A stretch of 64,000 bases of DNA, from positions 1-64,000 of the forward strand of contig QPMI01000441.1 in the NCBI GenBank assembly GCA_004431415.1, given 5' to 3'. Below, one piece after another: positions 8,387 through 59,516 of the stretch. How positions within the stretch are numbered: the first letter of the stretch is position 1; each line of letters starts with the position of its first letter. Made by a program: the position numbers and the translations under genes. Source of the stretch: Cyanophora paradoxa CCMP329 (taxonomy: Eukaryota; Plantae; Glaucophyta). Under the pieces are notes generated by a model. That model ran no database searches and was not told the DNA's origin. It was given only the letters and a program-made list of their open reading frames with translations.

Positions 8387-8424
8387 TGCTTCTTTTACTA
8401 AGAAGGAAAGAAAAATAATGTACA

Positions 8425-8688: not shown

Positions 8689-8707
8689 TCTAAACTACTT
8701 GTAGAAA

Positions 8708-9728: not shown

Positions 9729-9750
9729 CTATAAATTCCCAACAAAAAGT

Positions 9751-10797: not shown

Positions 10798-10816
10798 CTT
10801 TATATTAATCAAATAG

Positions 10817-33444: not shown

Positions 33445-36400
33445 CTACACGGCAACTGCAGATACAACTGCCGTGAACCCCAGAGCGTTCTGAATATTAT
33501 CTGCTTTGAGAATGAGAGGTAGTAGTATAACCGTAAGAGCCGCTCGTAGTATTAGATCTAGAGGTAAAAAGTTCCGTACCGCTCGTGAACCGCACGTAGG
33601 CGTAGCGGCCAGTCGTTTGATATGAAAACGGCGTCGAAAGAGTCCCATGCCGCTCCGCAAGCATGGTGGCGCTCGTAGAAGTGCCGTCGTAAATCTGCGT
33701 TATTCACGCCGTCAACGCGCGCGCCACAAGTGCGCTATCGAACCGCGAGAAGCCCATACCCTCACGTAGTCATAGCCCTGCTCCCTGTGACCGCGGGAGA
33801 GACAAGGCGCAGTAAATTGAATGATGATCAGCGCGACTCAAAAACATTTTAGTACTTATGACTCACGTGTCGAAAAATGTGAACTGAATATTAACTCTGA
33901 AGCCGCTCGGTGCCGTGATCAACCTACCATGCCACAATCGCGAAGACAGTGAGCGACATCGATCATATGCATATCAGAACGTCTCACGGCATGCGCAGGC
34001 ATTCGCATTTGCTACAGACCGCCCTCGATCCCTACAGATTTTATACAAAAGGATGTATTCGAAGGACCCGCACCACTTTCGGTCAGTGTCAATCTCGTAT
34101 GGCGTATCCGGGATGCCATCTTCGAATGCCGTGGCATTCGCCGTCGCGTTGAGCAGGCACGGGTCGTAGTTAGATCCGGGGCATGCTGGATCTATAACTG
34201 GAGACATGGAAGAATTAAGAATGTGCGCATGCATGCATAGCACAGAATATGGAGGTCTTGCAGAATGTGCACCGGCGCCTGCAGCTGGTCCGGATGCGCC
34301 GGGTGTCGGAGTAGGGGTGGGAAGTGGCGTCGGAACCGCATCGCAAGGCACGACATAGGTGGAATTGTAGCGGCGGTCGGAGCACATGTCGTTGCAACTG
34401 TAGTCCATGCAGGGAGCATATGGAAATAGGCAGTCCTTGCGAGCTTGGCCGAGGTTGCACTCACAGTAGCCTGCTCGCAGTCATCGGTAGCTTGCAACGA
34501 TGCAGCTTGCGGTAGAAGGGAGGCTGCGAAGAAAAATCAAAGTTTCCGCACCGGATGCGTAAACATTTATGATTGCCGACCCAGCTTTGTCATTGTACGC
34601 TTCCCGCGTTCCACTCCACACGCAGCCTCCCGTCTGAGTTGTTCGCCTTAGACAATCGCAAGGCTTTTGGAAGCCAAAAGCACCTGCTTCCAGCACAAGG
34701 CTTCGCTTGGCTTGCACCCGCCGAGACCTGCCACGCGCACGCGCTGTGTGACACTTCGAATTCTGCGGACTTTGCGTACAGATTTACGGACCAATGATAG
34801 CGGCGGATCCGGATGTAGCTGCTGGCACTGATTTGATTGTTGCGTTGAACCCCTCCCCGATGATATCGCCGTCTGCACTCCCATCGGATTGCGAATGGTG
34901 GAAGCTAATAATTCAGTGAGGAAGCCACAGACTGCTCGTGAAAACAACGAAGGCGTATCGATCCGCTGTCTCGTATGAGAACGGCGTCGACGGGGAACCG
35001 CTCAGCTCCACAAGTTTTGCCGCGCTCACTGACTGGCCGTCGAAAATCTGTCGACCATGAACCATGAATTGAGTTTTCGTCGAATTCGAGAGTGTTCATT
35101 CGCATCTTTATAATTATACATATCGCACCTGCACGAAGTCGGCGCCGCTTTCACTGCACCCATTAGTCAGTACAACGATTTAAAGTTAACGTTCGTATGA
35201 CCTTTTGATCAGCTGAAGCTCGCGCACGTGTTAAATCGGGTGAACTGGATGACAATTTTCGAGCCGGCGGCGGCCGTTATTCTCCTGATTTCCGTGCGCA
35301 TCACTATGTGCTCGAATTTCTGCTTTCATATTATAAATGCGACTACAGACTCACCATTTTTTGTTTGCATTGTTAAAATAATGCCGGCCGGTAGGACCCT
35401 CCTCAAATGTTGTTGGATTCGCGGTTGCGGTGAGGTCGCACGGGTCGTAAGAATTGCATCGAGGATCGATAGCTAGGCTCAATGTTAGCGTCAGCTCCGT
35501 CTCGTGAGAGATTGGAAGGCAGAGTATATGCCTGCCGATGGAGAAATCGCCGAGATTTTAGCCGCAAATCCTTGTCTGACGACCGAGCCATCTATAACAG
35601 CATACGAATCAGCGCGATGCAAAAACAAAATAGTGGCAGCGACGGCCCGACCTGTGACGAAATGCACAAATGCGCTACTGGCTGATGTCTCAAAGGGTAT
35701 TAAAGTGGCGATTGCAAGAGCTCCGTGCAAGAAAGCAAGCCGATTGCCCGTGCAACTTGACGTGCAAGTCGCGGTGCCATCGTACACCTGCGTATACGTA
35801 GCGCAGAGGATCCCGATTTGAGACCGGAGACGAAGGCATTAATAAGCAGCACTTATATTATTATTTCGCGCACGGAAACAAAGTCGTAGCCTGCTTCGGT
35901 ATTGAATGTTGTGAACTGTACATGTTGACGGGAGTCAACTCCTGTGAATAATCTAAGGAATACTCATCGCTTAGCCAGACCTCGATGCGAACGTTCATGC
36001 CGCTCGGGGCAGTGATGCGCCTGAAGTTGTGCACGAGAGTTCAACGAATGTGAGCGAGAATTACACGATATCGATAACAAATACGTTGCCCACCATTTCC
36101 GATCGAGGCTGTTGCTGTAGTCTCCAGGGGGTCCTTCTTCAAACACCGTCACGGTTGTATTTACGCTAATTTCGCATGGGTTCCAGACCACGCAGGCTCC
36201 GTTTACCACTGGCGTTGCGCAAGCGAATTTCAATCAGGCTTGGGCACGAGACTCTGCCTTTGCATGTATGGAGCACTCACGTCCAGAGACCAGCGGGGTA
36301 GGCGACGGACTCGGGGTTGGAGTGGGCGGCGGCGTGCTTACAACGACTGCGAAAGGCAGGTTTGTGGCGTTCGCACCTGGGCGCCGACCTTCTAGCGTCC

Positions 36401-39400
36401 ATGACCAAAACGTGAGACGCACCCGTACCCGTTTTAGAAAGCTGGAGTCGCACGAACGCAGCACTGTCTCTACCCCAACTATCAACGACACCGTCGTCGC
36501 CTGTAGCGGCAAATCTGCGAGCGCGGTTCACAAGATCAGATCAAATCAGATTGATATTGATTGGAATGCAGGCGCACATGGTGCAATTGTCCGGATCACT
36601 GCCGTACACAGAGAATTGCAGGTTCACTGCAGTCAGCGCCGGGCTGGCCGTGGTTACGGCCGTTCCCTCTGTGCTTGGATGTTCAAGGCTGCATCTCTAG
36701 CTATAAATGGTGTCGTAGGGACGCCGGCAGACGCACCGGAAATGCTGAATATACGTGGTAGCGCTTCTTTGATTCCCAGCATGAGCACGTTGTGGACGAG
36801 ACACCCGCCCAGAATGGGTCCTTGCGTCTGAGACCCGCCCTTGCTGAATCCGGGTACCCTTCCGAGGAAGTTGTAAACCCGACTGCCGGCCATGGAAGGC
36901 GACAAATCCACGGAGCTGAAAACGAAATTCAAGATCAGCTACAATCTTACAGAACTCATAACCCATCTCCAAAGTGATCTGCGCGCGTACGCACAAGACT
37001 TCGGCGGTGGTTGGGAAGTTATTAGGATTTATCCAGCCAACACGCCCAGCTGAGATATAGAGCTTCGAGCCTGCATCCAAGGGCTCCGTTGACAGATTCC
37101 GGGAGACGGGGAACGAAATTAGCACTCAAATAGGCACCCATGCGAGCGCAGGCTGGAGCTTCCCGTGGGTTCAGTGAGTATGGGTTGGAATTTTGTTGTG
37201 CAATCTCTGTTCTCCAAGTGTTGTTTGCGATCGAGTAGCGGATAAGGTCGTTGCGGTATTCTTTCTCCTGGGTGAAAGGGTACGAGCTGACGCCAGGACA
37301 CAATTTCGAATTGGTGAACCCTCCAACGACCTATTTGGCGATTTAATTGGAAAGAATGCTTTAGCAGGCGGTCGAGGGAGGTCGAGGGGAGACAGAGTGC
37401 ACCCAGACAGAGTTGTCATACACGGTCAGGCAGTGGCTGTATCGGCCGCAAGGCAGTGGGGAGGGCATATCGTATCGCGAGTCCAGAGTAATTGGGAACC
37501 TCCAGAAATTCGCGTATATATTGTCCCAATTTGTCGCACCGCCCGCACAATAAATAAAGGATCCTCCATCCCAGTCACACGAGTGGGCTTGAAAGCGAGC
37601 ATGCATCTTTGCCGTTTGGTATTCCCATACGCTTGAAGCAGAGGCCGTCGGAGATGCATCTGCACGCGAGATTTAAGAGGCGCATGGAGTCTTTGAGACT
37701 GTTCCGTGCGCGTGTACATGTTCGGAGGCGAGCGTTGTAAATGAAATATGCGAGCTACATGTACACGCGCACCGACGTCAGCAGTCCAAATATCGTTGAA
37801 GCCATTGTTGTAAGCGTCTCTTCCTCCAGAAACCATCAGGTAGCGGCGGTTGTTCCTCATAAAAAGCGTTCCCGCAGCTGATATTCGAGGACTGAATCCA
37901 GTGGCCAAAGACGTAATGGCGATCGGCTCTGCAAAGCGGCTTTAGAGAGCTAGCGTTAGATATCGCGCTGAAGTAATTATAGCGCAACGCAATCCGGCAT
38001 TGGTTGGTGGGGGCGTAGGTGATGGGGTCGGCGACGCCGGAGCTGCGTATACGTCGCCGCGAAGATGTAAGGGCCGGGTGAGCGACGAAATGGATTTCCT
38101 ACTTTGCGATACTGACCTACAAAGTATGAGTAGTAGTTTGCGGTGAATCCAGGGAAGGTCGAGCTGGGGTTGCTTTGGAACTCTACAAGGATGTGGTTGG
38201 CCGTGGAAGTGAAAGGCGTGAGGGCGCTCGCTGGACTCTTTCCCGAGAGCGTTACGCCAAGCTGGGTTACATTTTGCCCTTGGGCGTTGGAGGCAAAGAC
38301 CTACGCGAGCTGCATGTAAATTTGTCGAGATCTGGCTGATGCTCAGAAGCTGCGCACTTTAACGGTATCCTGGATAGCCTCAGTGTCGAAGGTAGCGACT
38401 GGGAAAGTGATTTGGATGCGATGATTCAGTGGAGCGGCTATGAGCCTGCCAAACAAACGGAATCAATATCATGATTAAATTACATCTGAGGCCTTCAATT
38501 TTCATCGCCCGCCTGCAGCTGACCTCTAAATTTTCATCGCTCTATCGTCTGCGCACGCATTTGCATGCTCACCATCTCAAAGTGATGCTGTTGGAATATT
38601 CGGTACCAAGCCAATCGGCAGTGCCAAATACTTTTCTCGAAGCATCACTAGTACCGGTTGCATTCAACAGGCAGAACGATGAAATCTGCCACGGATCATA
38701 CGAAGAGCACGGAAGCTCTGCGTGGAGCGGGTCAGATTCGGGCGGCACACGTACGCGTGTACAGTGCGATGGGCACCGACAGCCTTCACGGTAGCTGTGA
38801 ACTTAGCGAATGGCCTAGGATCCGGAACAAGACTTGATCGCTTCTCGTAGGTAATATATGCATGGCTGCCAGTCGTCCGGTAGACGATGGACGCAGCGTC
38901 CGTAAGATCAGCTGCCAAATTCATGTCCAGTTCGTCGGAGTATGCTCTGGAGGCTCCTGATCCAAAAAGCATCTGTTCAAACGTCTCGATTTCGCGACTG
39001 ATCATGATGGATTAATTAAAATTTTTACCTTGAAGTTACCAATTCCCCGGACCCCAGACGTAGGAGCTATGGGTTGCAACGTCTCGAATTTGATCTCCAA
39101 GCCCATTCCTGGGGGTGCATTGAAATACCTAATCATGACATATTTTCAATATCAGTCAGATCGAGATCGAAAATCTGTTGAATGAAGCACCATCGAATGT
39201 CGGTGAAAGCTTGGTGGCTTTCATCAACTCCGAAAGAGAGCGCTGTTATTGTAACATTACGCATGCACTCTCTCTCCGATACGCACTCCAAAACTGGACA
39301 GACCCTCGTTGGAAGGCGGTGGCACTCCCTACAGAGCGCACGCGCACCGTCAAGAAGCGGAATTGCCGCGTATTCCGCGATGAATCCGTCGTCGACGATA

Positions 39401-42400
39401 GCATGATTGCTGGTGAAGCGCACAAGCACAGCGTTTGCAGCCGCCGTCGTTCTCACCGTACTTTGAATGATATCCGTGTTTAAAGATCCAGAAAAAATAG
39501 AAGGGACTTTGTAGCCTTCAAGATCCGACGACCTCGTTTCAACCGGTAACGTCGATAAACGTTGATAAACGTCTGTGAAATTTGACCAAAGGCCATCCAG
39601 GGATGTGAAAAACGGTCGGGATGTATTCAATGCGTATATCTGCACACGCACGGACGTCGACATGTACCGAAACCGAAAACGATTTAACCATACATGTACA
39701 ACGACAGTGCGCACCTCAACGAAGTCCCTACTCGGTTCAGTCGCCAAGTGGAGGAAACGCAGCCTGATGCGCTGGTTAAGAGGAGCCCCGATTAACCTGC
39801 CCGTATGGTCGTAATGATCAGAAGAAGAACCAGACACAGAAGGGACAGCGATCCAAGTCAGACAAGACGCGCACCAGTAGCGTTGCAAATTATTCGCGTA
39901 GGAGGTACTGGAAGGCCCCTCTTCAAACGTATCGTCGACGTCCGTTGCGATTAGCCGGCACGGGTTGAACAAAGCGCATCTCACATCTGCGCGGATATAT
40001 ATGATCATGACACACATATGAAGGCTGCGCCGAGCGCTAGCGCCGCCTGGTAAAATCAAATTGAATGCGCACTTTCAGCCCTGAACTGAGCTTTGAACCC
40101 GTGCCCTGAGCTGCGATTGTTGGACTGGAAGACCAGATAAGCCCGGCTGCTGCTCGACTTCAGAATTCGAACAGGAGGTATGTTCGCGATTGAGATGTCT
40201 GGATGGTCTTCAGACGAAAAGATCATCACGCCGCTCTCGGCATCCCCATCGTAAACCTGATAGCTCCAGATTTTGGTCCGATAATTTAAAAATTCGAATT
40301 CAGCATCGCAGGTTTGGACTCACGTGCAGTTTGTCTCCGGGCTGCATACTCCAGAAAATAAACTCAATGATGATGCCCTTCGGAAGAGCAGCCGTACTGT
40401 CTTCGGCGGTGATTGACCTGATTATGAGCGAGAGGGAGCGCGATGGGAGGCGTACGAGTCAGCTACGCAGCATGCGGGTTTGACATCTAGATCCTGTTGC
40501 GCACGCGAGCTTGTAATGCGCATGCTCACCATTGTCTTGTCACGTTTGTCGGGTACAGCATCCCAGTCGGGCCCTCCTCGAGCTCCTGGACTTCACTCGT
40601 AGCCGATAGCGGACATGGCGGGTTGTAGAAGTTGCACCGAGATTCTGCGCATGCGAAAGAGAATGAGATTTGTGGGGACTTGAAACTCGGGATCGCAACA
40701 CGAAGCGTGGGAAATCTCACCAACAGCCTTGAATACGGCTGCAAATCCGTCTGGTCTGCCATAGGCAGGCAGCACCGTCCGGTTTTCATAGACCAAAAAG
40801 GCATCCTTGCTCGTTCTATACCGCCCGCTTGGCAGATCCGGATTGAAAGGAGGCGGGAAGTCTCGACGACTCCAATCGGAAAATTGAAGGCTGGCTATCA
40901 AGGGTGCGGCGCTCGTGGTGCCGTCGTACAACTACGTTGCAAAATGCAAATCAGGTTTAATTATAAGCCAAACCTTGCATACGCATTCACAGCAGAAAGA
41001 AGGCCCACACGTACATGTACAGTATCGTTTGGTAGACCAATGTCAAAACGAGAGAAACTTATTTCAATTCCATAGCCGCTATCCGCTCTTATTAACCTGG
41101 GAACATTAAGGTCATGGTCGGTATCAGGCGCGTTCGCTTCCCAAAAAACTGTTTTGTTTAATCCTTTAAAGTTTGTTGGAATCACCGTGCACGCACCAGC
41201 TGCGAGTGACAGAGGATGCCGAGCCTCCTTCCAGAGTGGCAAGGGTTGCAGTTGCTTGCAGGCTGCATTGCAATTGGAAAGCGCACTGTGAGCTTGATGT
41301 GTTTCGATCAGATGGATCTGCACAAAAAGTGTGCATTGTCAAGCAGAGGAGCCACATATACAACACCACCATAACCCGCAATCACTGTGCAAACCCGCGG
41401 CTCGGAAACGCGCAACGAAGCCCATCCACGATAATTCACCAGAGCCAACAGATGTTATCTCAAACTGGCCGTCAGCTGCCATCTTTATATGGGCCCGGGG
41501 CCCAAGCGTTATTACGGATCGTGGCGTTAATGGGATGCCAGTGTCGTTGTTGGCCGATAGCTGCAGCCTCGCCAGAGGCTCTGAACTTTGCTCGAATCCA
41601 CCGCGGATCTATTAGCAAGGTCAGGACGGAATGTCGATGGCACTTGGCAAAACGCGCACCTCGACATAGAATTGACGGGGGAGATCGAAGCTCGATATTT
41701 CAATGTGAACGCTCTTTCCGGCAGGGGCCTCAAAGAACCTGGGCGCCAAATTGGATCGGATTGCTGACAATGATGGACCCGGTCAATAGATGTTCGCCGT
41801 ACCAGAACGTGGGTTGGAAATCTTCCAAAATTGCGTCTTGCAGCGACAGGCCATCCTCCACCCACCGCCAATTTGGCCGGGCAGAACAGGGCGGGTCGCG
41901 CGGGCATTCCGCTTCGAGAGGATAATCCATGAGCATCTTGCGTCCAGTGGGATGCGTGACCACTCGGTAACGCGCGTTAATCGTGACACCGGACATATCG
42001 CTGACGCTGTGCTGATGCCATTTGGTGCGGGAGACCGTCGCAGCGTCCACCACGAGGAAGTTGATAAACCTCGGCGACCGCCAAGCCGAAAAGTGGGTTT
42101 TAAAAGCGATGGGGAGCTTAGCCGCAGCATCTGCTGCACTCTCTATGACGACGCGATCTCTGTGCTCGCCTCCGTCTCGCAGAGCTGGCAGGCCAGTTCC
42201 GTAAATCCCTTCAAACTGTACGCGTGCAACAATAAGAGGTCGGACCCAGTGGACGCTGGATCGTCTAACTGGAAACGAATCTCGTAGCGCACAGTTATAG
42301 TCAAAGGGTAGTTCACAGAGCCCGAGAACAATATGCCAATTATCTCGAACTCGACTCTCGAGGCGTTCCACCCGTTCTCGATTTTGCTATATATATGGCG

Positions 42401-45400
42401 AAGGAAATCTTAACGAGTCAGTACCAGAGCGAGCGCAACATTGGAGCACAAAGTAAATGCGTCCGCACATTCTGGAGAGCTGTGAGTTCTCTCCCATCGT
42501 TATGTTCGTCCACTCCGTCGAACTCGGCAGCCAGCAAGTGTGAATTCGATCGACTTTGTGATGCGCAAGCTCGCAGTAGCGCCTCCGGATGGGACACGTC
42601 GGAAATTGAGCTGGAACCCTGTTGTCGAACGACGAGACGTTTAGCTCTCCGAAATACCCGGGGAGCACATTGGTCCCCAAGAAGTCGCCGCTGTCGGCCG
42701 CGGGCTTTGCCAGTTCGTCCGCTGCGTCAGATTGCTGGGCCACGCCGTTTGACGAAACGCGCCAGAAGAAATCACTGTAGAATCCAAACTCCAAGGCCGG
42801 CGTGGAAGGGCCAAGAGACATGAAGGACGGAGAGTCAGCCGCGAGCACAGTCGAGGCTGCGGGCGACTGCCGAGAGCCAGCTGCAACGAAAGCTCGGCAC
42901 TCGTAGGCTGTGAATGGGCTCAGGTTCACAAGACTAAATCTTGCCAGTGCAAGTTTTGGAAGTACTCCCTCGAATCGTTTCCCGCAAATTTGTAGCGCCT
43001 TCCGGGTCGGGCTGGTGCTGTCGCGCAGGAAGGGCTCCCCCGAAAAGCCAATATAATCAGTCATGTTGACGGCCAGCACGGAGCTGCCTTGCGGGTTGCA
43101 CTCGATCACTGCTGTTTCCGGAGCTGCGTCCCAGATGCGGGTGCTGTAAACGAAGGCTGTGGCGGTGGTGGCCGACGTGCGAACGAGCTGAAGAAGAGGC
43201 GCGGCAGGGTCCCATTCCACGGCGTCGACACCTGAGACCGGGCGCGTTGCAAAGTTCGCCGCGCTCGCCGAGGTGTACTTTTCACACAGCGTCTGCACAT
43301 TAGACGAGGCGTTGTTGTTTCCGTAAGTGCTTTCGAGCTCGCTGTTGCTGAACGTCCGACTGACGCGCGAACACGCCTCAGCAAGCAACGAGTCACGTGT
43401 AAGGTCGATCACGCGGATGGCGAAGTCTCCGTTTGGCTGCCTGTAGCGGATCGCCATGTAGTCGCTGAAGAAACGCGAGTTATTAAAATAAAATGGAAAA
43501 TAAGCGAGAATATTCTCACCCATTGTCGCTAGGAATCGGCACTGCTGGCAAGATATTGGTGCCGGACTCGTCGACGAAAGTCTCATCGACAGGGACCGTG
43601 CGAACGTTCTCGCTGGACTGAACTTGCGCGCCCTTTTCCAGATCGTACATGTTGAGCTCCGTTTGCGATTGCCACACAGCGATAAACCGTCCTGCCAATC
43701 GCGCGGTTTAGTGCAATTGCAACTGATCAGCGCGCGCGAGCTCGAGGCGCAAGAAAATGGCAAGGACGGATGGCGCTCGCACCGTTTTTGGAGGTTCTGG
43801 GAGCGTACAATCCGAACTTGAGCTTTAAACCCTTTGAATCCAAAGATGTTGTTTCATCTGCAGCTGGTGTACTAGTGCTGCCAACGCTAGAGCTAACAAC
43901 TCTGGCGGCATCCCATACGGCATCCTTTGAACTGTATCCGATGGCCGAGACGGAATCCACAATCCACAGTGTCGAGCCGTTCGAGGACAAATAAACAGAG
44001 CAGTCCGCTGTGAGGTTAACGTTGCAGTCAGCTAGGGCTAGCTATATAGCTCTACATATTCTTTTGGAGAACGGATGAAGATCAATGACAGACGAGCTCA
44101 CCGTATGTAGATCTGAGAAGAATTATTACGATCGAATGTACGTAGAATTCGAATGAGCAATCGCATAATGTATTAAAGCAAACTCACCCCCCGCGAGCAT
44201 TTTTGATGACACGATGCTTTGAGTCAACGTAATCGAAAAACCTGCGCACGATTCGATATGAACGGCACAGTTTGAACAGCTTGAAAACAGCTTGAACGAA
44301 CTTATTTCCTTCGATGGTCGACTGCCTGCTTGTTGTTGGGTTGTCAAGAACGTTGTCGGGCGATGGAATGCCTGCGAGAATAAAATAATCAGCGGCTTTT
44401 ATAATTATGAGAGCAAACATTACGGCGGCGCGCCTGGCCGACAACCGTAATTTTAAAAGCGTTTCATTGCAATTGCGTGTGTGCGCGTCACTCACAGATC
44501 CACGACGAGAAGACTTTGGCTTTCCCAATAGAAGATGCGTCGGCAGGAGCGCATAGATTTGGCGAGATTGGCCCAGTGCGGCTCAGGGACCTTCAGGGCA
44601 CCTCGGATGCTCCACATATTTTGCTAGACGCGCGGACCCATGAGTAGCGCTTAGAACAGACAAAACTGCACGTGCTCAGCGACGAACCATGCCCGAAGCA
44701 AGGGCCGAACGCTGGGCTGAGAGAAGCACAACCGTCTCGATGTCCTCTGCGTATCCCCCTTGCACGGAGCTGCAAGAGCGATGCAGGCAAATATAAGCTT
44801 CGATTGGCTGGTTGGATCACTTGACCAGCTGCAGGAATTCGGCACCTGATCGTGAAAGAATTCTGACTGTCCGAGCCTTCCGACGCGAAGAGGTCGTAGT
44901 CGAAGTCGTTCCAGTCAAACTTTCTGTCAGACACAACGCCATATGAGCTGAAGCAGAAGAAGCAGAGGGACGCGTCTCTGTTAAATCCGGCGGCGTGTTG
45001 AATGTCTGGGGCGAAAGCCCAATCAAGAACTCGCGATCGAAAGCACAACAATAAATAAAAATGAACACCGTATGCATGAAAGTAAGCTTCCTTCTCGGAG
45101 CCGGTGGCAGAATTCTTTAGAACCTGCTGTAAATCAAAGACATTCCGTTTGTACGCTGTGCAGTCCTCCAATTCTCGACTTTCTCGATCTGGTATGTCTT
45201 TGACCGAAGTAGAAGTCCGAATGAAACAAGTTTCTTTCATCCTGAAAAAGTTGTCGCTAATGCTGGGCTTGAAAAGCTCCTTCCGCACTGCGTCCATATT
45301 TTCAAAGATCGACCAGGACTTATCACTGCTTGAGACTGGTAGCCCCTGAGGACACATAGATTAATGCAGGAAGCGCGCCGAGCTGTCAAGCGCGCACATT

Positions 45401-48400
45401 TTCGTCGAGGGTGTAGACAATGCCAGCCAATGCCGCGTATCCCTGGGGGGCCGATGGTCCAAGGTTATCGTGCACGAAAGCGATTGGCTGCGCACGTAGC
45501 GTTCGCGATCGATTCGGCAATGGGATTGGGAGGAGAAATGTAGGGAGGGCGAGGTAAACCTGATAGTGCTCCGAAGGATGTGGGAAGAAGTTTGCCTCGG
45601 GTGGCCGAATAGGTAGGTTATTGGGCACGACGTGGCAGCTTGCAAGCAGACCGTTGCAATTTCTGTTGTTCTGGGTGAGAAAAGGCTGTCTGTTCGCGTC
45701 GGCAGTTGTGCAATTCGGACAGATTCCGGTAGTTGCAAACGGATAGAAGTTCAGGTTTGTGCGGACAGTTAGCGTGTATTCGCTGCCGTACTTCGACTGA
45801 ATGAGAGGAACGCGAGTAGCAGTCGACACCTGATACGTGAACTCGGTATCCCACGGCAGCGTTTCCGGCCCCCTACGCCAGGTCCTGCAATCGACCGCGA
45901 AGTCAAAGCGCAGCGTAATTTAAAAAAGATATGAATGGCGCTTGCCATGTATTTCTCGTTTGTAGAAGAGCCGGATGCTCGCATTTGTCGTTCCCAGAGT
46001 TGCTGTTCGTCAGCAGGCTCCCTCCGGTGGCGGACAGAGCCAAGAGCCCGCCGCTCAGCGGGTGCTCGCCGAGCCCTGGGAATGAAGAAGCCCCGGCATC
46101 AGCGACCTGTCTCGAGACGTACGACGGAGCCGCTGGTTTCAAAACTGACGCACAGCGGAAGCCCAGGCTGGGGTTGTTGCAGTCGGGGCACAGGTCAGAG
46201 GCAAACTCCGTCGCCGGGCGACCTCCCGGCTGCCTGCCGAGCGTGTGCTGCATAGAGACCAGCTGTGATCCAGAAATAATTTGCGTGGGTTGCATGAGGT
46301 TACGCAGATCTTGCTTGTCAACGTCCCAAACGGCGGTCTTTGCTTGTCCGACAAGAATAAAGTGGCACGACAAATTTTTTGTCAGGAAAATGCCACTGTT
46401 CGGTCCAAGCAAATCACCCTTTGACGCATCGGCATTCAAGTACTCCAGCGTTTCATCGTTGAGCGTGGTGAGCGTGCTGCCAAGATCGCCGTCGTACAAA
46501 GTCATGCCCTGTCCGAGTTCGATTGCAATTGGATCTGGAGTCAGCTGCAGCGATCGGGAATGCACATCAAGCTCTAAGTGCTCAAACATGTACTCACTTT
46601 TAGTAGGACGCGTGCGGAGCCGTATTCCCTCGCGTTTGCTGCTGCTAGCTTCATGCGGGCAAAATTGCCGCTTTTGTCTGCAAACAAAATCTGACGGTCG
46701 TCCTTTTGAAGAACAACCGTCCGGATTGCACTGGTAAGTGCTTTGACCTGGATCTACGCAAAATAAAAAACCATGAACGGCGACGTCGATCAAATACCGC
46801 GGTGAGGACCATCCATCGAGGAAAATGGTGAGGACATGTATGCACGCGCACCGCTTGCGTATCAAGAGGAATGTCCGCCAGGTTACGGATCTCATTGATT
46901 GCGGCATCCCCCTGATCGTTGCCAACCACTACAAGGCTTCCAGAACGCTCCCCGAGCAAAGCAATCTGAGAGCAACACTCGTTGCATCGCGCCAACCCCT
47001 GTTCTATCGGTAATGGACGGAGAACGAGCAGCGGCGCACCACACGGCGGCGACGGAGGAGGTCGAGTGGTGAGCCCGTGTAGGCGCTTCCGCATCCTGCG
47101 CGCAAGCTCATCAGAGAGCTCAAGAGAGCGTACACCACGAAGGGCTCAGCTTACCAAGCTCAGTGACAGGCCAGTATTCAAAGGGGTCCTCTGCACGAAG
47201 TGGGACGAACACAAGCTGCTGCCGCACGCAGGAGGCCGAATTCGATGGGCTGTTACGGAGAACGAGGGCGCCCAGCCCCGTCATGAACCGGTTGTTTTCC
47301 TGCGCGTAGCATCTATCAGATGGCTATTTTTAGAGCAGAACGTGCACATTCAATTAACGTCAGCCCTCCAAAAAATGTAGTGGAGAACGTTGCAATCAAC
47401 GTCGGCCCTTAAAATAACCGATACGCACAGTGCCTTCCGTCTGCTTGTAGAACGTAATGTCCACTAAGGCAAGGTCGGGGTCGCGAGCATTTTGAGGTGC
47501 GCTGTCGGAATCCGTGAACAGCGGATTTTTAAACTTCGAGAACTGCTTGGGTAAAGGCCGGCCACTCTGTCGCTCCCACACTGTAAGAGTCGCCAGGTTA
47601 CCGTCTGTTCCGCCCGCATCTCCGATTGTGATTATGCGCATCCCCTCGTTGACAGTCGAGCCGTCTGAGGCGTTGCGTTGCACAATCGCGTTCGTGTACG
47701 TCCCTGGAAGAATCGCAGCAGGTAAATGCACTTTGAAGAGTAGATTCCACGCGTATGGTGCGCTCGCCCTGCCGCCGATGTATTCCACCTCGCGTCCATC
47801 CTGCCGCAGAATGCCGACGAGCATTGAGCAGTCTTGCGCTGCGAGCAGATCCTGCGTCCCGAAGGCGAGGAACTGCGGCCCGCGGGGGTCGTAGAAGACC
47901 TCGAGCGCTGTGGTGTTTGCGAAGAAGGTTGTAATCAAGTCGATCTTCGCTTGCATGGTAACGCTGCGGGAAGCAAACTCTTCGATGGGGGCGAGCCAGA
48001 AGGCGCCTTCGCCGCCTGCGACAAGATACTCTTTGCCCGAACTCTTGCACGTCTTGGGAGAGAACGCAAAGCCCGCAGGGTACGGGTAATCCGCGCTCAG
48101 GCGGGAAATCGCGAACAGATCGGGGCCGAGATCGAAAGTTTCGTAGTTTGTTGGGTAGAACTCGCACAGGTCGGGACTGCTAGGAAGGTATCCTGCGCGC
48201 GGTAGCATGAGCTTAAGCTTGAAGCATGCATAAATACGCATGTGATTTTGACATCCTCGAAACATACCGGGGTAAGGCGTGGAAGGATCTACGCTGCTGA
48301 GGGTGAGGGGCCCGATAAACATGCGGATCGCCACGCGAGGCAGAGCGCTGCGCGAGGCCCAGTCGGAGCAGTCGTAGCAACCAAAAATTTCGGCGATTTT

Positions 48401-51400
48401 AAGTCGCTGCTGCTCCGTGTACTGATCCGCATCTTCCCAGCCTGCAACAGAAGAGCAGAAGCTCAAGATGAGCTACAGGAAACGAGTTTCTAGGGAGCGC
48501 ACCCTTCCATCCGGCGGTCGACTCGCCGACGAGTGCGGCGGTGAACCCTCTGCCGACGAAGACGTCGTGGACGTCGAGGAGGTAGTTTGAAGGGCTGCTT
48601 TGTTTTTCAAGGCAGCCACGCTTCCGAGACGCCGCTTGCTCCTTTGTGTACAAAACCAGAATGCCCGTCGTCGAAGGCAGGCATCCAATGGGAGCCCCGT
48701 AGTCGTACTCAACGCCTCGGTACTGGTGGTTCGGATTAGGTGTAGGCGTGGGCGATGGTGACGGCGGAGTCGTTGGTGCCGCTGTAACTGGCTCGGGCCC
48801 GGCTTCGGTCTCGCAGAGGAGGGGCTCGTGCCCAAGCCGCCTAACATGCGCAGCGTCGTCAGCAGCCTAGCATGTGCACATGCTGCCTGACTGGCGCACC
48901 GGACATGAACTATGAGGTCGCCGAAGTCGTCGACGAACACGCGAGTCGCGCCGAGGTAGAAAGCCCAGAAGCTCGTCTTGTTGACGCCAGACAAAAGAGT
49001 GTCCTTGATCGAGTACTCGATTTGCTGGTCTCCGTTCATGATGTGCGCAAGGAGCTTGGCCTGCGCAAGGAGAGGGGAATGCGCCGGGTGATTTTCAGCG
49101 ATCGAAACGTTTTAGGGGCTAGCGATATCGATTGTGCACCTGGTAAACTTCGGTTAGAGGGCTGTCGCCCTCTGTCGGAGCGACAATACCGATAGCTGCC
49201 ATCACAGTGAAGTTGCCGTTCGGAGACGATGCGACAAATGTCTGCAGAGATATGCATATGCGAGGCGTTAGCAGGTGCTGGTTTGGCTGATCCTGACTCA
49301 TGGCTTAGAGCTGTTGAATAGGAATCTTAGCTTGCCTTCTATCATATGGGGGCTGCGCATGCTTCATGCTCGAATGGGCATGCAGGTGCGACCGCGGACC
49401 TGAAAGTCGGAGAAGGTTTCTTGCTCAGCAAAGTCGGATATCGATTGCGATGGCGGCGTGGCTTCGGAGGAGGCGAGTGCTCGGCCTCGAGCTCGGCGGC
49501 GACGCGCAGAAATGGAGGATCCGGTAGCGAGGAACTCGCTGTTCGAAGCCTCGAGGACCTTTCGCAGCGTGCGCTCGGCGTCGGCGAGGACTGCTGGTGA
49601 ACCGAAGGCGCCGTTCATCGCCTCGATCGCGTAGAGCATGGCCTGCTCCGGGCTCGAACTGATCGCGGAGAGCGACGCCGCAATGCTGCGCACACAATTG
49701 CAAGCCGGTGCACAATCGCGTTAACGCGCTGTTCCTTTACATTTAATTTGGCGCACAGCGCTTGAAAAAGCGCAAGCACACCTTGTTCGAACCAGCGCGA
49801 CGGCTAGGGCGGCTTCAGTTGCCGCCTTCGCCTGAACAGCTGCATCCTTGGATTTCAAGGCATCTTCTTTTGCGGCAAGCGCTTCCTCTGCAGATGCCAG
49901 TGCTAACGCTTGGGCCGACAGTGCTTGTCCTTGCGCCACCAAAGCTTCGTCTCTGCTCTGAGTAGCATTGATTCTTGCAGCTTCCGCTAGGAGCTTTTGC
50001 GCCTCAGCAGCCTGCGCATGATCGAATAAATTAAAAAGGCAGCGCCGCTTACTTTTAGATGCTATCCGGACATTACGCACGTTTTTCTGCATTTCTGCCT
50101 CGCGCTGTGCCGAAGTTGCAGCGTCAGAAGCGTTTCTGGCCTTGTCGCGCTCTATTTCCGCTTGAATTGCCGCGTTTTGAGCGAGCTTCTCTTGAGCTTT
50201 AGCATTTGCCTCTTGCGCTCTAGCATTCTGTGTGCACGTGGATCCTGGTCAGCAAACGGGCCGGTCCACCTGGGTATAACATTAAAGCAGTAAGCAAGCT
50301 TGAAACAGACCTGTTCTTGCTTCAAAGCCTCGGCTTCTGATACCAATGCTTTGTCTCTCTGCACGAGTGCGTCTGCTTTTGCTGCGGCAGCGAGCGCCTC
50401 CTGCTGCCTCGCCTCTGTAGCAGACTTCTCCGCTGCAGCCTCAGCCTGTTTGGCTTGCTGCGGCCACGGCCATCGGCGGGCAATTGCAAAAGCAGCGCGG
50501 CCGGGGGTCATCATCGCGTACCGCTTCGGCTTCTCGTGCGTTGGTCGCCTCCTGTTCGGCACGCCGGCTTGATTCCTCTGCCTGAGCCTGTCGCTGGAGA
50601 GAGATAACTGCGGTTTCGCACTCGTTATTTCAGAGGCATCACACGCTGGCCATAGACAGCCGGCCTCGACGAGACACGCACCGAGCATGATGAACGCGAC
50701 GATGGTCAACGCGACCATAACTGCAGCGGCGAGCCGCGGCCCGCATTCAGCGCGTGAACGGTTCTGAACTTCACGCATTGATTATTCCGAGCGTACTCAT
50801 TGCGATGACAGTTGCGATTGCTGCTACCTTCCTCTTCTGGCGCATGGCAGCGTTAATGGAGTGCTTGACGAGCACCTGTCCGTGCAAGCCGAGTGAGCTT
50901 CAGCAGAGCACGCCCATGGCGGTCGCGGCATAAGTCATTCTCACGCACAATGTGCTCTGGAGTAGGCTCGAGCGAACGTTGTGCCGACGTCTTGACGGAT
51001 GCTTGCCGCTTGAGCTGAGTGTTGTCCGGATCCTCCGTCTGCTGAGGCTCTGTGTCCAATTTCTTGTTCTTCTTCGAACCCTTGTCGGATTTGACGATCT
51101 TGACCGAAAGGAAATTCTCGACTAGCGAATCGGAGTGGTGGTCCGGATCCACGATTTTGTACTGTGGTGCAGATCACGCCAAAAGCACTCGTGCTTGACA
51201 GCGGTCGCGCATCTCACGCACGTTTTTGACGCCGAAAATGCTTTGGAACACACTGAAAGGGGTGCGGGCGGCCTTAACGATGTGACCTGTCTCCTCCAGC
51301 CACTTTGCCCGAGTTTAAAAAATTAAATACTCGAGGGGGAAAAAAGAGTCAGAGAAGATACCTTCCGGCCCTCCTGGAGCGCGAATCCATGCAGCAGGAA

Positions 51401-54400
51401 TGCTTCTGCCTTTTTGCGCTTCTCCTTGTGGATCTGTTGTTCATGATCAGGCACGGGTGTGACAGATTGATATTAATATTAAATTTGCGCTGCAGCTGGG
51501 TCTCAGGTGACCTTGTCAATGTGTACCGCCCTCGGGTCCGGCCACCTTACAGAGACGTCGAATCCAAGTGCTGGGGACATCCCCGTCAAACCGGAAGCTC
51601 GCGCCCAGCAGGCGCGATCGCGTTCTTGAACTGACCCTCTTTGTACTTGTCGGCGCGCAGCGAGAGCTGCGTGTGCAGACGCGCCTTTTCCGCGTCGAAC
51701 TGGCGGCGCGCGATCTCATGCGCGAGATTTGTGGGAAACTCCGTTGAGATCTCGTGTGCGCACCCGGATGGCTTCTTCGAGCTCGCGAAGCGACTCCTTG
51801 AACAATGGGTCTTTTTCAGCTGCCTCCGCAATTTCGTCGGGCTTTACGCCAATCAGCTCCGGGAATGTCACTTTTTGCCTGAAGACAGATCATGATCATG
51901 ACCAGCGTTAGCGGCATGAGGACGGAAATCGAAACAAGAAGTGAAAGGGCGGCGCATACCAAGAATTGATTGCGTTGAGGCACATACGCTGCCGCCTGTA
52001 GTGTGCGCGCCACATTCGTGTCAGCACATACTCTAGTCAAAGGTCGCAATTGCAAGTAACGCAAGCGCCGGCGCCATATACATCACCTGTTGAAGCTGCG
52101 TTCCTTCTCGGTGCACGGGCCTCTGAGCGCGAGGTGGTGCTCCTCAACGGGAGTCACCTCGACGACAACAATACGCTTCTGGTTCGCGAGTGCGTAATCG
52201 AACTCTGCGGCCGATTGCGAGCGGTGACGGCTCATGATCAGCTAGCGCTTCTTGCAATTGAAAATTGAAGGGAGCTCGAGGGCCGGGGAGCGAATGCGCA
52301 CCGTCGATACTGCGCACCCAATCCGATTCAAATTCCACGAGAGGTTGGTGACGCGACGTGCATAAATGTAATCAGTGGGTAATAAACGGCTTATACATGG
52401 GCGATGTACAGTCTTCCAATACTGGTTCCGAAGACTATAGGCGCACCAGTATGTTGACTGAATCCAGTCAGGGGTGAGAATGACGAGAATGACAGACGCG
52501 CCCTTGATGCCCGCGGCGATGGCCTTCCCCCTGTGCCGCAGCGTGTGATCATGAGCGATGAACTGCTCAAGCTTAAGAGGGGCGTCTACAGCAGCGCACC
52601 ATTGAACACCCTTGAGGATTCCTGCGCATGTGTCTTACAGCGTCATGCAAAGGTGCAGATACGCAGAGATCTTATCGTATACGTAAGGCCCCGCACCGTT
52701 GTCGCCAGCAATGTCGAGCCAGTATGAGATCTTCCTGTCCTCCAGAATCTTGCAGAGCGTTTTCATCTCTAGGCGTGCTTGCGCGGTCAGAAGAGTCGAG
52801 CGCTGATAAGCGAATGCAGGTCGCACCGTCCGTGTTCTTCCTGCTCATCGATCAGGCCACCCCGATTAGAACGGAATCATTCAGCGGGGCGCCGGCCATA
52901 TGCATATGTATTGCAAGCGAATTCGAAGGCTTCAAAACCAATAGCTTATTGGTTGGCGGACCTTCGATACGAAATCATTACCTGCACGCAAGCGAAAAGC
53001 GTATAAGTTCACGTCCCGATATATATGAGGAGAAACGAAGACAACGTTGACACACGTCCAGAGCCTTGATGGGAGTTTTCGCGTCTGGCTCAACAACTGC
53101 CCCATGCGCAGTGCAGAAAGGTGTTCAAGTGATTGCGAGAGATACGGATACATATATACATATATATGTATCCAGGGAAGTGCCACGGTGCGCGAAGGAG
53201 CGTTTAACGTCTATGGCTAACGCACCGGAACTGCCTTCGGGGCGAATGATGGTTGACAGCTCGGAGACGCCGGTCACCAGCCCGTCCCCTGCTGTGAGTC
53301 AGGACCAAAGCCGATCAAGGCCTAGGAAGAGCCGGCGCAGCGTACCCTGGAAGCTCGAGACGTGTATCTCACTGTGAGAGGCGAGGAGCCGAAGGGCCTC
53401 GTCTACCTGCGCGGCGTCCGCTCCCGCGGCCTTGGCCTCTCGGGCCAAAGCCGCAGCGGGCTTGGCGTTCGTGCTGATGCAGGCGATGCGCCGCTCGAGC
53501 CAGTGCGCGTGGGCCAGCTCCGTTGCGCACATCCTGCGCAGCCGGGGGCGGGGGCGCCGCGCGCGTCACCGAGTTGGCCGCAACCGAACTCGAAACGTGG
53601 CGATCAAGCCCTCAAAAACGAGCAAACGGGCTCACTTTGACTTGAACCACTCTGCGGAAGGAGACGAGAATCAATTTAATTTTTACTCCAAGCAAACGAC
53701 AAAGCTAAAGAATATGCGGTGCCGCGTGCACTCGCGTATATATACATACCGACAGAGGCGAGGACGACAAAACACTCAGAGCCCTCGATCCCGGCCGACA
53801 GGCGGCGGCGATGCATGATGTTCTGGAAAGTGGCCTCCCCTTGAAGCTCGTAGAGGCACTGTGAACGACTTGCTAAGCGTGCGTGCATCGAGCCTGCTCC
53901 GATTGTAGTGGCGCACCTTGAGCCCCTGCTGCTCAATGGCGCTGACCAGGGTCTTCGCATTGAGGTTGTCTGCCCCCCGAGCAAAGCTGACATACCTGCG
54001 CGCGCGAAAATAAAAAATTCAATTACTAATCGCGGAGATGGAATGTTCGAGTTCGCATTGCAATATTAATTGAGCACGAGCGCACGCGTCATAGTACAGG
54101 ACGGAGCCTTGGGAAGGCTCCGGGAGCGGGGCGCTGCTGTAATCGCGCACGTCGTCGGAGACGAATATCGTTCCGGGTTCTGCGCATGTGGGCGGAAGTG
54201 GCCATGGGTCAGGATTGGATAGGTCCAGGGCCGGGACGACTGCCAAGGGCCCTCGAAGACTTGCAATTGTGCGCGCATGCGCGCACCTCCGGCCTCGACA
54301 CCGCCGGGGACGAGAGTGATGTTGCGTGGGTGTGCGCCCGCAGCAGGGTTCGCGGTTGCGAGCTGAGACTGGCCCCCGTCGCGGTCGGGCATGACAACGT

Positions 54401-54733
54401 CAACGTGCACCTGCGCATGCGGAAGTGACGCAGATAGTTCAGTATCGCAGTGATAAGTAAGAATTTCGAAGGCGTTTTTTGGCGGCGCCGCGTTGACTGG
54501 TTGACTGGTGCGCGTGCGGCAAGAGACAATGAACGCACCTGGACGTCGTTCTGGTCGACCCGTATGGCATCTTTTGGCCATGGGGCCTTCGCTGGGATGA
54601 GGGCGGGCGCGCTTGGTGCTGGCAATGGCGGGCCGGCCGCGTTCGCCGAGAGAGAGACTATGCGCGAGTCTCTCGCCGGGGACGCAGCTCTCGCGCGTGT
54701 GAATTTCTGGTACTCGCTGCGCGGGGAGGCCAT
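33445..54733 (-). CDS. Giant multi-exon receptor-like gene: TIR-TIR, helical linker, TM, coiled coil, putative beta-propeller, FN3, multiple CUB, Kelch repeats
   Basis: TIR1 YDA/YVSFARG..GIEGSECFVVLAS..CATELAHA; TIR2 VMISYR..ISYWLD..GIKGASVILVILTPDWIQSTY; TM at ~50680-50820; FN3 NLSPFTAYECRA; CUB motifs IYDG..RFTSD..GF; Kelch SGGRD..NDIW. A single transcript is inferred, not proven. Confidence 0.65.
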
Positions 54734-57073: not shown

Positions 57074-59516
57074 CTACAGGCGGACGGTGGAGGAGGCGGA
57101 GGGGGCGGACTCGAGGCGGGGCGAGTCGCTGCGGGGCGAGCCGGCGTCGAGGTGCGCGCCCCGAGGGATCCCCCGCGCCGACCCCGCGCCGGCGGCGGCG
57201 CCGGGGCCCCGGAAGGAGCTCGCGCCGTTGGGCGCGTCAGCGCCCGTGGAGCGCGGGGAGGAGGGGGAGAGGTCCCCGCGGAGCGCAGCGCGGCCCGCCC
57301 CGCGTCGCTCTGCAGCAGCTGCACGATCGCCGCGTTCCCTTTGAGGCTCGCCAGCTGCCGCCCCGCCCCGCCCCGGCTCAGGCCGGGCCCGGGCGATGGG
57401 CGGGGTGGCGGGGCGGGCCTGGACGGGGGTGCGCTTGCGCTTGTCGGGGGCGAATCGGTCGGCTCCGGCGGAGAGCAGCGCGCGCACCGTCGCCTCGTCC
57501 CCCCGCTCGATCGCTAGGTGCAGCGCCGACTGCGCCGCCGGCCGTCAGCGGCGGCGGCGGCGCGCGCCGAGCGGGGGGCGGAATTTGCATGCGCGCCTGC
57601 TCGAGCTGGTTCTTGGCGTTGACGTCGATGCGGGGGCCGTACTGCACCAGCACCTGCACCGTCGTCGAGTGCCCGTTCTGCCCCCCGGCCCCGCCGCCGC
57701 CGCCCCCGTCAGGCCCTCTCCCGCCCCCTCCCGTCAGGCGGGGCGCACGGCGGCGGCGAGGTGGAGGGCGGTGGAGCCGTCGGTGGTGCGGAGGTCCTTG
57801 GCGCAGCTGGCGGCGATCAGCGTGCTGCAGACGTCCGCGTAGCCGCCGACGGCCGCCAGGTGCAGGCTCGACGCCCCCGCCCGCGTCTGCTTGTTCTTGT
57901 CCGCCCCGTACTGGATCTGTCACGCCGCGGCGGCCGTCACGGGAGCGCGCGGTAAGGCGACCCGAACGCGAGCCGGCCGGCCGGGCGCACGAGGAGCTTG
58001 ACGACGGGGTTCTGGCCCTTGGCGGAGGCGGCGATGAGCGCCGTGGAGCCGTCCACGGCGCGCGCCTCCTTCTCGGCCCGCTGGTCGAGGAGGTAGCGGA
58101 CGACGGCCTCGTGGCCCTTGGCGCTCGCGATGTACAGCGGCGTCGCGTTCTCGTCGTTCCGCGCGTTCTTGTTCGCGTTCGCCTCGGCCAGCACCTGCAC
58201 CACCGCCAGGTGGCCCTGCGCCCCCGCCCCGCCCCGCCCGTCAGCGCCCGCGCGGCCGCCGGCCGCCCCGCCGCCCCGCCGCCCGGCGCGCCTCCTGGCT
58301 GGCGGTGTGGAGGGGGGAGAAGCCGAGGGGCCCCCGCGCGTTCCGGTCGGCCACGCCGACGAGGTACCTGCACCCCCGTCAGGTGACCCGAGGGGCGACC
58401 GTTTCCCCCGCTGCCCCCGCACCGGACGACGTGCTCGTGGCCCTGGACGGCGGCGAAGTGGAGCGGGGTCGCCTTGCGCGCCGTCGTCGCGTTCGGGTCG
58501 GCCCCCGACGCCACCAGCAGCCGCACCACCTCCTCCGCCCCCGCCTTGCACGCTGCCGCCCCCGACGCCTCAGGCGCGCGGCGGGGCGGGGCGCGGGGGG
58601 CGGGGGGCGCGGGGCGGGGCGGACCGAGGTGGAGCGGGGTCTGCTCCAGCTGGTTCTTCACGTTGGGGTTCTCGCCCCTGCGCCCGCCGCCCCGCGCTCC
58701 GTCAGGCGGGCCCGGCGGCGACAAAGCGGGCGGGCTGGCGGGCGCGCATGGAGAGTAGGACGCGGGCGACGTCGACGAGGCCCTTGCGCGCCGCGAGGTG
58801 CAGCAGCGAGTTCTGCTCCTTGTCCACGAACCCCTTCACCGTGTGCCGCAGCCGGCTGCCCCCGCCCCGCAGCGCGGGCCCCGTCAGCCCGCGGCGGGCG
58901 GGCGGGCCGGCCGGCGGGCGGGGGAACGGGCGACGGCGCACATCTCTTCTATCGCCGCCCGCTCGTTCCCTGCGTCGACGAGAGCCTCGGCCGTCCCCGG
59001 GAGGAAGGTGGACGACGCCGGCGCGGGGTCGGCGGGGACCGGGGCGGGGCCCGGGTGGGGCTCGCTGGGGCCGGGCGCCCTTAGGGGCGAGAAGTCTGTC
59101 TGAGAGCCCGAGTCCGATCCCCGCGGGCCCCGCACGCCAGGGCTCGTGTTCAGCCCGACGCTCGTGCGGCTCGAGTCGCCCGCAAAGCCGTCCTGCCGCG
59201 CGGCGCTCAGAAGGAACCGAAAGGAAACGGGGCGATCCGCGCCAGAAGGTACGATGTAGCGCTCGCAGAACGACTAAACGCGCTGGCGGAAAAGAGGGGA
59301 AGGAGCACCTCGTTGGTGGGGGTCTGCTTCTTTGGAGGCGGCGAAGGGAACTGCCGCGCAGAGGTGTCCTCCCGCGGGCTGCGCGTGCGCGCGTGAGGCG
59401 GCGATGCGCCGGGACCGAGCCGAGCCCGGCGCTCACTTCTGGGCCGCGCCGAAGCAGCTGGAGAGCCCGCCCAGGCAGCTGAAGACGCTGGGCCTACACG
59501 TCGACGATGATGCCAT
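57074..59516 (-). CDS. Ankyrin-repeat protein (multi-exon)
   Basis: NSLLHLAARKGLVDVARVLL, QTPLHL, ATPLHFAAVQGH, ATPLYIASAKGHEAVVRYLL, STALIAASAKG; start position inferred. Confidence 0.85.

Follow-up and report, generated by a model that had tools for sequence, protein, structure and literature searches.

A predicted TIR-TIR membrane receptor gene with a probable CUB/Kelch tail in the glaucophyte Cyanophora paradoxa

We analyzed 64,000 nucleotides of the glaucophyte Cyanophora paradoxa CCMP329 (contig QPMI01000441.1 of assembly GCA_004431415.1, positions 1 to 64,000; this whole stretch is called the window below). Its minus strand between positions 54,733 and 33,445 probably carries one intron-rich, intact gene for a type II membrane protein with two cytosolic TIR domains in tandem (TIR1 and TIR2), an outer part containing an FN3 domain, and a probable CUB/Kelch tail. 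The TIR-TIR-helix-stalk-FN3 part of this receptor gene is very likely real, and it looks intact. In the immunity of bacteria, plants and animals, TIR domains act by signalling or by killing. Our literature search for TIR receptors of Cyanophora or glaucophytes turned up no paper, nor one describing the family, in agreement with the original prediction (an earlier reading of the letters of this DNA), which had called the receptor undescribed.

All of the peptides quoted in the original prediction lie in the window on the minus strand, and the same strand shows long stop-free stretches of 488, 358, 341 and 313 residues between 33 and 55 kb. Translation of 33-55 kb on the plus strand yields junk, and the gene is assigned to the minus strand. 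A variant genetic code, considered for single in-frame stops, was ruled out, as these stops fall within short introns between adjacent open stretches. A splice-aware dynamic-programming model of the ~21-kb gene needs ~80 exons, with median lengths of ~125 nt for exons and ~75 nt for introns and an intron donor consensus of GTGCGC. The best path with fixed parameters on the minus strand has a score of 335, with 4,491 codons and 71 introns, against a score of at most 8 and zero introns for the opposite strand and for random sequence; the path parameters were trained on the same locus, and this control shows that coding and splice signals are present and does not place the gene boundaries. Two automatic gene models include wrong exons and serve as scaffolds only.

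Across the locus, 36 introns were curated by hand: all are GT-AG and 47-150 nt long, and their removal restores paralogue-conserved motifs exactly, also through exons of 8, 16 and 20 nt, without a stop or frameshift. In the inner half of the gene, from the ATG at 54733 to 50081, 27 curated exons joined across 26 GT-AG introns (47-137 nt) encode 834 residues without a stop, C. paradoxa paralogues having been used as guides in setting these exons. The C. paradoxa proteins P0004, P0006, P0007 and P0008 are colinear with the locus. The GC (guanine plus cytosine) content across 33-55 kb is 0.46-0.63 with no GC-rich spacer within and rises to 0.66-0.74 in the flanks, while the neighboring DNA (14-32 kb and 56-64 kb) reaches 65-80% GC, compared with 46-63% over the whole gene. 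Pfam runs on 30 stop-free stretches, each taken alone, gave no TIR and no CUB match and only sub-threshold Kelch matches; the lack of TIR and CUB matches on single exons is explained by the domains being cut by the ~80 short introns. If continuous, the protein would have ~4,600-4,800 residues encoded by ~80 exons. The predicted features are listed below.

54733 to 33445, minus strand: whole predicted gene, from start ATG to stop, based on the located peptides and the splice-aware model.
54731..54733, minus strand: predicted start codon, where the open frame has its first ATG; nothing at the N-terminus resembles the hydrophobic stretch of a signal peptide.
54100..54733, minus strand: low-complexity N-terminal region in three exons, closing in the motif RDYSSAPLPEP, which is conserved in P0004, P0006, P0007 and P0008.
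53460..54099, minus strand: TIR1, manually spliced at canonical GT-AG sites (exons 54239-54086, 53995-53917, 53858-53750, 53651-53636 of 16 nt, and 53533-53346).
52087..52981, minus strand: TIR2 (exons 52981-52962 of 20 nt, 52836-52697, 52621-52600, 52530-52447, 52309-52302 of 8 nt, and 52204-52087).
51222..51995, minus strand: post-TIR helical module (FDAEKARLHTQLSLRADKYKE ... AEAFLLHGFALQEGRKWLEE), common to bacterial TIR-membrane-WD40 proteins.
50683..50827, minus strand: single predicted transmembrane helix, VAAIATVIAM/IMVALTIVAFIML, preceded by RQKRK (exons 50875-50797 and 50720-50682, with a 76-nt intron between).
49782..50607, minus strand: Ala/Gln/Glu-rich stalk of ~200 residues, 31-36% Ala and zero Pro.
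43783..49685, minus strand: family-specific outer region, Cys-containing and beta-rich, with blade-like repeats at its end; colinear with P0004 residues 733-2076.
42834..43463, minus strand: conserved shared domain on a single exon, with helices and a beta-hairpin ahead of a predicted FN3-type beta-sandwich (~43211-42834), from profile search, fold model and Foldseek.
42216..42833, minus strand: junction from the FN3 exon to the CUB/Kelch part, the weakest link of the model.
38117..42215, minus strand: first array of CUB-like units, U1-U6, after ~95 unassigned residues of beta-rich sequence, from a curated chain and a CUB profile.
36737..37928, minus strand: Kelch-type repeats with at least four blades in five exons, from sub-threshold Pfam matches and Atlas look-alikes.
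34788..36376, minus strand: the CUB-like units U7 and U8 with a Pro/Thr linker ahead of them (36376-36281), from phmmer with the P0001 CUB.
34273..34700, minus strand: Cys-rich segment, then a Pro/Thr linker, with no Pfam match.
33445..34185, minus strand: U9, the final CUB-like unit, spread over five exons (34185-34074, 33923-33867, 33784-33766, 33694-33580 and 33500-33445) with introns all GT-AG and a profile match.

After splicing, TIR1 reads YYDA/YVSFARG...GIEGSECFVVLASV/EWFKSK/MCATELAHA (54099-53460), and its catalytic-type Glu codon lies at 53520-53518, within CATELAHA. TIR2 reads VMISYR...YWLD...AIAAGIKGASVILVILTPDW...STYC/IDE/FDYALA (52981-52087), and its catalytic-type Glu codon is split by an intron, with g at 52302 and ag at 52204-52203 (STYCIDEFDYA). 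The Glu at the catalytic position (alpha-C motif C-x-x-E) is kept in both domains. Conserved TIR motifs depend on three micro-exons encoding EWFKSK (16 nt, 53651-53636), VMISYR (20 nt, 52981-52962) and C-IDE (8 nt, 52309-52302), which are flanked by consensus GCGCAG acceptors and GTGCGC-type donors. Exons of 8-20 nt, together with the extreme intron density, account for the fact that these genes are broken up or overlooked in public models.

The TIR identity of the window domains is assigned because P0004 (tig00020848_g14611, 2350 aa), a colinear C. paradoxa paralogue, passes Pfam TIR_2 (PF13676; cut-off 28) with 31.9 bits for TIR1 and 64 bits for TIR2. A tblastn search of P0004 against the window finds TIR1 at E 4e-4 and TIR2 at E 1e-13. 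The N-terminal cytosolic tandem TIRs claimed earlier are supported: both were spliced by hand, no signal peptide precedes them and their P0004 homologues pass TIR_2; the TIR profile match itself is found twice in P0004 and on none of the single window exons. When P0004 TIR2 was compared with solved structures, the TIR of plant RPP1, an enzyme that cleaves nicotinamide adenine dinucleotide (NAD+; such enzymes are called NADases), was the best match, and the TIR2 Glu (CIDEF) aligns with the catalytic Glu of RPP1; the remaining structural hits comprise TIR cyclase/hydrolases of plants and a CRISPR-associated TIR. P0004 TIR1 has no match among the solved structures in PDB. Plant TIR NADases (RPP1 5teb/7crc; 7xoz) and SARM1-type TIR enzymes share the C-x-D-E-[LF] Glu that aligns with paralogue TIR2, but they are soluble cytosolic proteins (in NLR or ARM-SAM contexts) and not membrane receptors.

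It is possible, though we consider it doubtful, that the protein has the same architecture and its TIRs are non-enzymatic scaffolds, which recruit soluble TIR proteins as animal Toll-like receptors (TLRs) recruit adaptors and are not NADases. The divergence of TIR1, with its low paralogue score and no PDB match, is consistent with a scaffold, whereas the Glu at the catalytic position in both TIRs and the nearest solved structures to TIR2, which are NAD+-cleaving plant TIRs and the CRISPR-associated TIR, argue for enzymes.

Downstream of TIR2, the post-TIR segment contains a 22-residue block that is 86% identical to P0004. Two in-frame acceptors 15 nt apart are present here, at 51714 (before IARRQ-FDAEK) and 51699 (before FDAEK). 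The acceptor at 51699 gives the exact paralogue spacing, and the pair may mean alternative splicing.

The single hydrophobic segment after a basic patch that had been noticed earlier is clear: VAAIATVIAMIMVALTIVAFIML, directly after RQKRK, has a Kyte-Doolittle value of 3.16 and aligns with the P0004 helix. The next most hydrophobic segment in the curated N-terminal 834 residues reaches 1.62, within TIR2, and the outer part has one charge-interrupted hydrophobic stretch of 2.1-2.17. No signal peptide was found at the N-terminus, where the top 10-residue Kyte-Doolittle value in the first 30 residues is 1.24. N-glycosylation sequons occur at 1.4 per 1000 residues before the helix and at 8.8 per 1000 after it, a sixfold enrichment on the predicted outer side. 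A type II, single-pass orientation with the N-terminus inside is well supported by inference, because there is no signal peptide, one strong helix follows RQKRK, sequons are enriched on the outer side, and the large outer part consists of modules of extracellular type; the type II topology of the original prediction stands on the same grounds. The Ala-rich segment after the helix was also recovered, as ~200 residues with 31-36% Ala and no Pro, and this stalk is probably a coiled coil.

Between the stalk and FN3 lies the family-specific outer region, which contains a Pro/Thr linker at ~48781-48730. We suspect a beta-propeller in this region. P0004 has a PD40 match below threshold (E 0.0013), and the window exons show no WD40 or PD40 match in Pfam. 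For the 331-residue exon 48421-47429, an AlphaFold2 model from 4 sequences has a predicted local distance difference test (pLDDT) score of 34, too low to be of use, and the Atlas look-alikes score <0.9. The shared domain follows. An AlphaFold2 model of 43463-42621 has a pLDDT of 66-81 in the sandwich and 50 overall, and the top 50 Foldseek matches to the shared-domain model are almost all FN3, with E ~1e-5 and a template modeling score by target of 0.7-0.8. The modeled structure thus places an FN3 fold after the hairpin and helices of the shared domain, where the original prediction had expected one, and the paralogue P0002 has a weak Pfam fn3 match.

The window gene is one member, and the largest variant, of a gene family of Cyanophora. 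When the 488-residue stretch 43853-42390 was the query of an exhaustive profile search, the matches were four proteins only, all from Cyanophora paradoxa in EukProt. P0004 has two Pfam TIR_2 domains and one strong helix, and P0001 (tig00000139_g8297, 1003 aa) has the shared domain followed by a Pfam CUB (E 1e-12). Additional searches found the further paralogues P0006 (tig00020904_g15278, 3079 aa), P0007 and P0008. P0004 is colinear with the window over 11 kb, from 53861 to 42795, through TIR1, TIR2, the post-TIR segment, the helix and the outer region, and over the curated N-terminus of 834 residues the identity is 42% with P0004 (E 1.8e-145) and 47% with P0008. The paralogues share with the window protein the RDYSSAPLP motif, TIR1, TIR2, the post-TIR module, the basic patch, the helix, the Ala-rich stalk, the outer region and the shared domain with FN3, in the same order and with 25-65% identity.

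The paralogues differ in what follows FN3. P0004 and P0006 stop there, while the window locus has ~9 kb more, with ~9 CUB-like units, Kelch repeats and a Cys-rich segment; P0001 runs from FN3 into CUBs, as the window gene is predicted to do. The modules after FN3 differ from one family member to another. Several family members are split or truncated in public models and unnamed in the gene set; P0008 and P0003 are numbered tig00001181_g7418/g7420 on one contig, which indicates that the public models split these genes. The C-terminus of the public model P0005/P0002 (tig00000630_g2734) has a Cys pair and then a Pro/Thr linker (…TPLPTGVPTLTPSPSPPLLPEI), which suggests that this model is truncated and that more modules follow FN3, and this fits exchangeable post-FN3 modules.

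A search limited to TIR2 and the juxtamembrane part found a bacterial protein, P0010 (995 residues), on a metagenome contig (JGI), between a Clp-type ATPase gene (Clp_N/AAA/ClpB domains) and a PMSR (methionine sulfoxide reductase) gene. P0010 has a TIR at 1-100, a helical module at 130-180, a basic patch (RKNQRQQQKR), a helix at 211-229 and WD40 repeats. In BLASTP, P0004 matches P0010 with E 2e-16, and the alignment runs 75 residues past the TIR into the post-TIR module; the curated window model matches P0009 and P0010 with E 1e-8 and 1e-7, respectively. Like the window protein, these bacterial TIR-membrane-WD40 proteins (P0010 and P0009; uncharacterized) have an N-terminal TIR with a catalytic-type Glu, on which follow the homologous post-TIR helical module (LLSG..A..W), a basic patch, a single helix in the corresponding position, a stalk that is short and helical, and an extensive outer part made of repeats; the N-terminus is inside. 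They differ in having one TIR, ~1,000 residues, no introns and a WD40 propeller. In the window gene there are two TIRs, the stalk has 200 residues, the outer region is far larger, modules of FN3, CUB-like and Kelch type are present, and a propeller is suspected only. Our literature search found no description of bacterial TIR-membrane-WD40 proteins. Bacterial conflict systems include TIR effectors that make ADP-ribose derivatives (PMC7159879).

The ancestors of the family are thus bacterial TIR-membrane-WD40 proteins, which already had this topology, and a second TIR was gained afterwards. The orientation opposite to that of animal TLRs, described in the original prediction, is upheld, but not as a protist invention: P0010 and P0009 have the same layout, with TIR, post-TIR module, basic patch and helix position all in common, and the reverse orientation is therefore inherited from bacteria. 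Animal TLRs are likewise single-pass membrane proteins in which a large outer recognition part is coupled to a cytosolic TIR. However, they are type I, with a signal peptide, an N-terminal outer part of leucine-rich repeats (LRRs) and one C-terminal, non-enzymatic scaffold TIR, whereas the window protein has no signal peptide and carries tandem N-terminal TIRs with catalytic-type Glu. No LRR match was found within the gene in the Pfam runs on stop-free stretches, and the window protein is not a member of the TLR family.

The TIR part and the CUB/Kelch part would lie on one transcript, a point on which we are moderately confident. Coding-like sequence runs ~60 residues past the P0004 and P0006 ends, and the coding score is highest there (5-8 per 25 codons). 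After a low-scoring junction stretch, a candidate 94-nt exon ends at 42293 with the donor GTGCGC. The frame stays open in all four junction models tried, there is no exon gap larger than ~250 nt, GC content and intron style are uniform along the locus, and in the public model P0001 this shared domain is linked to Pfam CUBs. Downstream of the junction, no start codon accompanied by a signal peptide is convincing. Met-initiated hydrophobic stretches at 41372 and 38505 were considered as second-gene starts and rejected, as they are translated pyrimidine-rich intron ends between consecutive CUB exons.

Several observations weigh against a single continuous, intact gene. The coding score is negative at 42575-42400, and an in-frame TAG lies at 42389-42387. 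With a matrix built on the 36 curated introns, the candidate acceptors joining the FN3 exon to the next score 0.2, -2.4 and 1.6, compared with at least 2.1 for all 36 curated introns. A CUB unit spanning the FN3-exon junction, which would prove continuity, was sought and is not supported, with negative profile scores in four of four junction models. Two full-length paralogues, P0004 and P0006, terminate shortly after FN3, at a point that corresponds to ~42795. No near-identical protein was found in the public protein sets searched, where the FN3 exon has a best match of 42% identity, so the window member is absent from those sets. The continuous gene of the original prediction is likely, with a frame that can stay open and poor acceptors at its junction. 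Since all four junction models keep the frame open, sequence alone cannot decide, and our confidence in one transcript is moderate.

The locus could instead hold two genes on the same strand, a TIR-TIR-membrane-stalk-FN3 receptor gene ending at 42.6-42.39 kb and a gene for a secreted CUB/Kelch protein at 42.4-33.4 kb. This arrangement fits the paralogues that stop right after FN3, the in-frame TAG with the low coding score before it, the uniformly poor acceptors and the lack of a detected CUB unit across the junction. With an in-frame ATG at 42470, CGRIYFVLQCCA after it and a splice that joins 42425 to 42354, the second gene could also have a weak signal peptide, but its Kyte-Doolittle value is only 1.28, and the frame of exon 44 has no upstream Met. 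Moreover, the two genes would overlap or abut within <250 nt, without a GC-rich spacer like those that flank the locus, the strong coding signal extends 60 residues beyond the paralogue ends, and P0001 links the shared domain and CUBs in one public model. We consider two genes unlikely. A decaying, unexpressed family member (a pseudogene), in which the open frame would be an artefact of flexible intron modeling, is improbable: the gene is missing from the public protein sets searched, the dynamic-programming models contain wrong exons, one needed TIR2 acceptor is an unusual GGAAG and the splice sites at the 42.6-42.3 kb junction are poor, but the 36 hand-checked introns are canonical, conserved motifs are exact without a stop or frameshift, the micro-exons have consensus sites, the path score is 335 against at most 8 in controls, and both catalytic-type Glu residues are retained.

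In the preferred one-gene model, the tail begins with the CUB-like units, which share a recurring five-exon pattern whose "a" exon closes in a Trp codon split tg/g. The curated chain 42215-40530 (U1-U3a) has seven exons without a stop, and U2 scores 27 bits on the CUB profile. The best-preserved CUB-like unit is U8, with 34 bits over positions 15-112 of 115. A phmmer search with the P0001 CUB (Pfam E 1e-12) against the local spliced model gave 69 bits in total, and a reversed control gave no match. The iterated CUB profile detects U2, U3, U6, U7, U8 and U9, finds only weak fragments of U4 (best 12.8 bits), and leaves U0 and U1 unrecognized. Pfam CUB (PF00431) matches none of the single stop-free stretches, even one spanning most of a unit; the window units are assigned as CUB because they are homologous to the Cyanophora paralogue CUB that passes Pfam. 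About six CUB-like units had been proposed; their kinship to the P0001 CUB is supported, and the count is revised to ~9 by motif and 6-7 by profile. The last unit, U9, ends in the stop TAG at 33447-33445.

In U7, two adjacent stretches resemble CUB "b/c" exons, 36016-35948 and 35921-35874 (ITAPSGMNVRIEVWLSDEYSLDY and HVQFTTFNTEAGYDFVS). This pair may represent duplicated or mutually exclusive exons, or a decayed partial unit.

The Kelch repeats named in the original prediction find weak support in the Atlas, where look-alikes of this stretch score 0.96 and all 10 of the 10 best named matches belong to the Kelch clan, while the Pfam Kelch matches on two exons (37672-37364 and 37330-37025) have E values of 0.0013-0.03, below cut-offs. 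The description of the ectodomain as attractin-like is narrowed. Attractin and MEGF8 ectodomains have an overlapping module list (CUB, Kelch propeller and Cys-rich), but their modules differ in order and number, no PSI, C-type lectin or laminin-EGF module was found here, and attractin is type I and without TIR; the likeness is one of a shared module list only, and no homology to attractin was shown.

The predicted protein would place a low-complexity N-terminus, two TIRs, the helical post-TIR module and the basic patch inside the cell, followed by the membrane helix. Outside would stand the Ala-rich stalk, the large family-specific beta-rich region and FN3, and then, probably, ~9 units of CUB type together with a Kelch propeller and a segment rich in Cys. 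A ligand of the outer part could bring receptors together, so that the cytosolic TIRs associate. The associated TIRs might then cleave NAD+, yielding a signal molecule or depleting NAD+, or might recruit other TIR proteins. Such a protein would act as a surface sensing or defence receptor, a role that we infer only.

The family is a eukaryotic one that keeps the full bacterial TIR-membrane-sensor layout, including topology, post-TIR module and catalytic-type Glu, to which introns, a further TIR and outer modules of eukaryotic style have been added. If expressed and active, these proteins would give an early-branching alga membrane receptors whose signalling relies on NAD+ chemistry. More tentatively, glaucophytes may have kept and expanded bacterial-type surface receptors, in which binding outside is coupled via one helix to tandem NAD+-cleaving TIRs and the modules after a constant FN3 are swapped (none, EGF-like, CUB or, here, a 3,000-residue CUB/Kelch array). 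They would then form a third class of TIR receptor, independent of the TLRs of animals and the TNLs of plants, and would connect bacterial TIR immunity directly with its eukaryotic counterpart. The family, if expressed and active, would also offer a testable case of bacterial-to-eukaryote immune receptor inheritance and of diversification by module addition.

The DNA around the gene also has distinct features. Positions 1-12000 of the window form a block of 37-42% GC in an otherwise 55-74% GC stretch. An open reading frame at 3559-4578 has a D5 N-terminal (primase/helicase-type) match, and another at 9751-10833 has a C1q domain. This block has the look of a virus-like insertion and lies ~20 kb away from the receptor gene. 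On the two flanks of the gene, LRR matches are present at 24627-25838 on the plus strand and ankyrin repeats at 57378-58724 on the minus strand, and these stretches may be other receptor-type genes adjoining the TIR gene.

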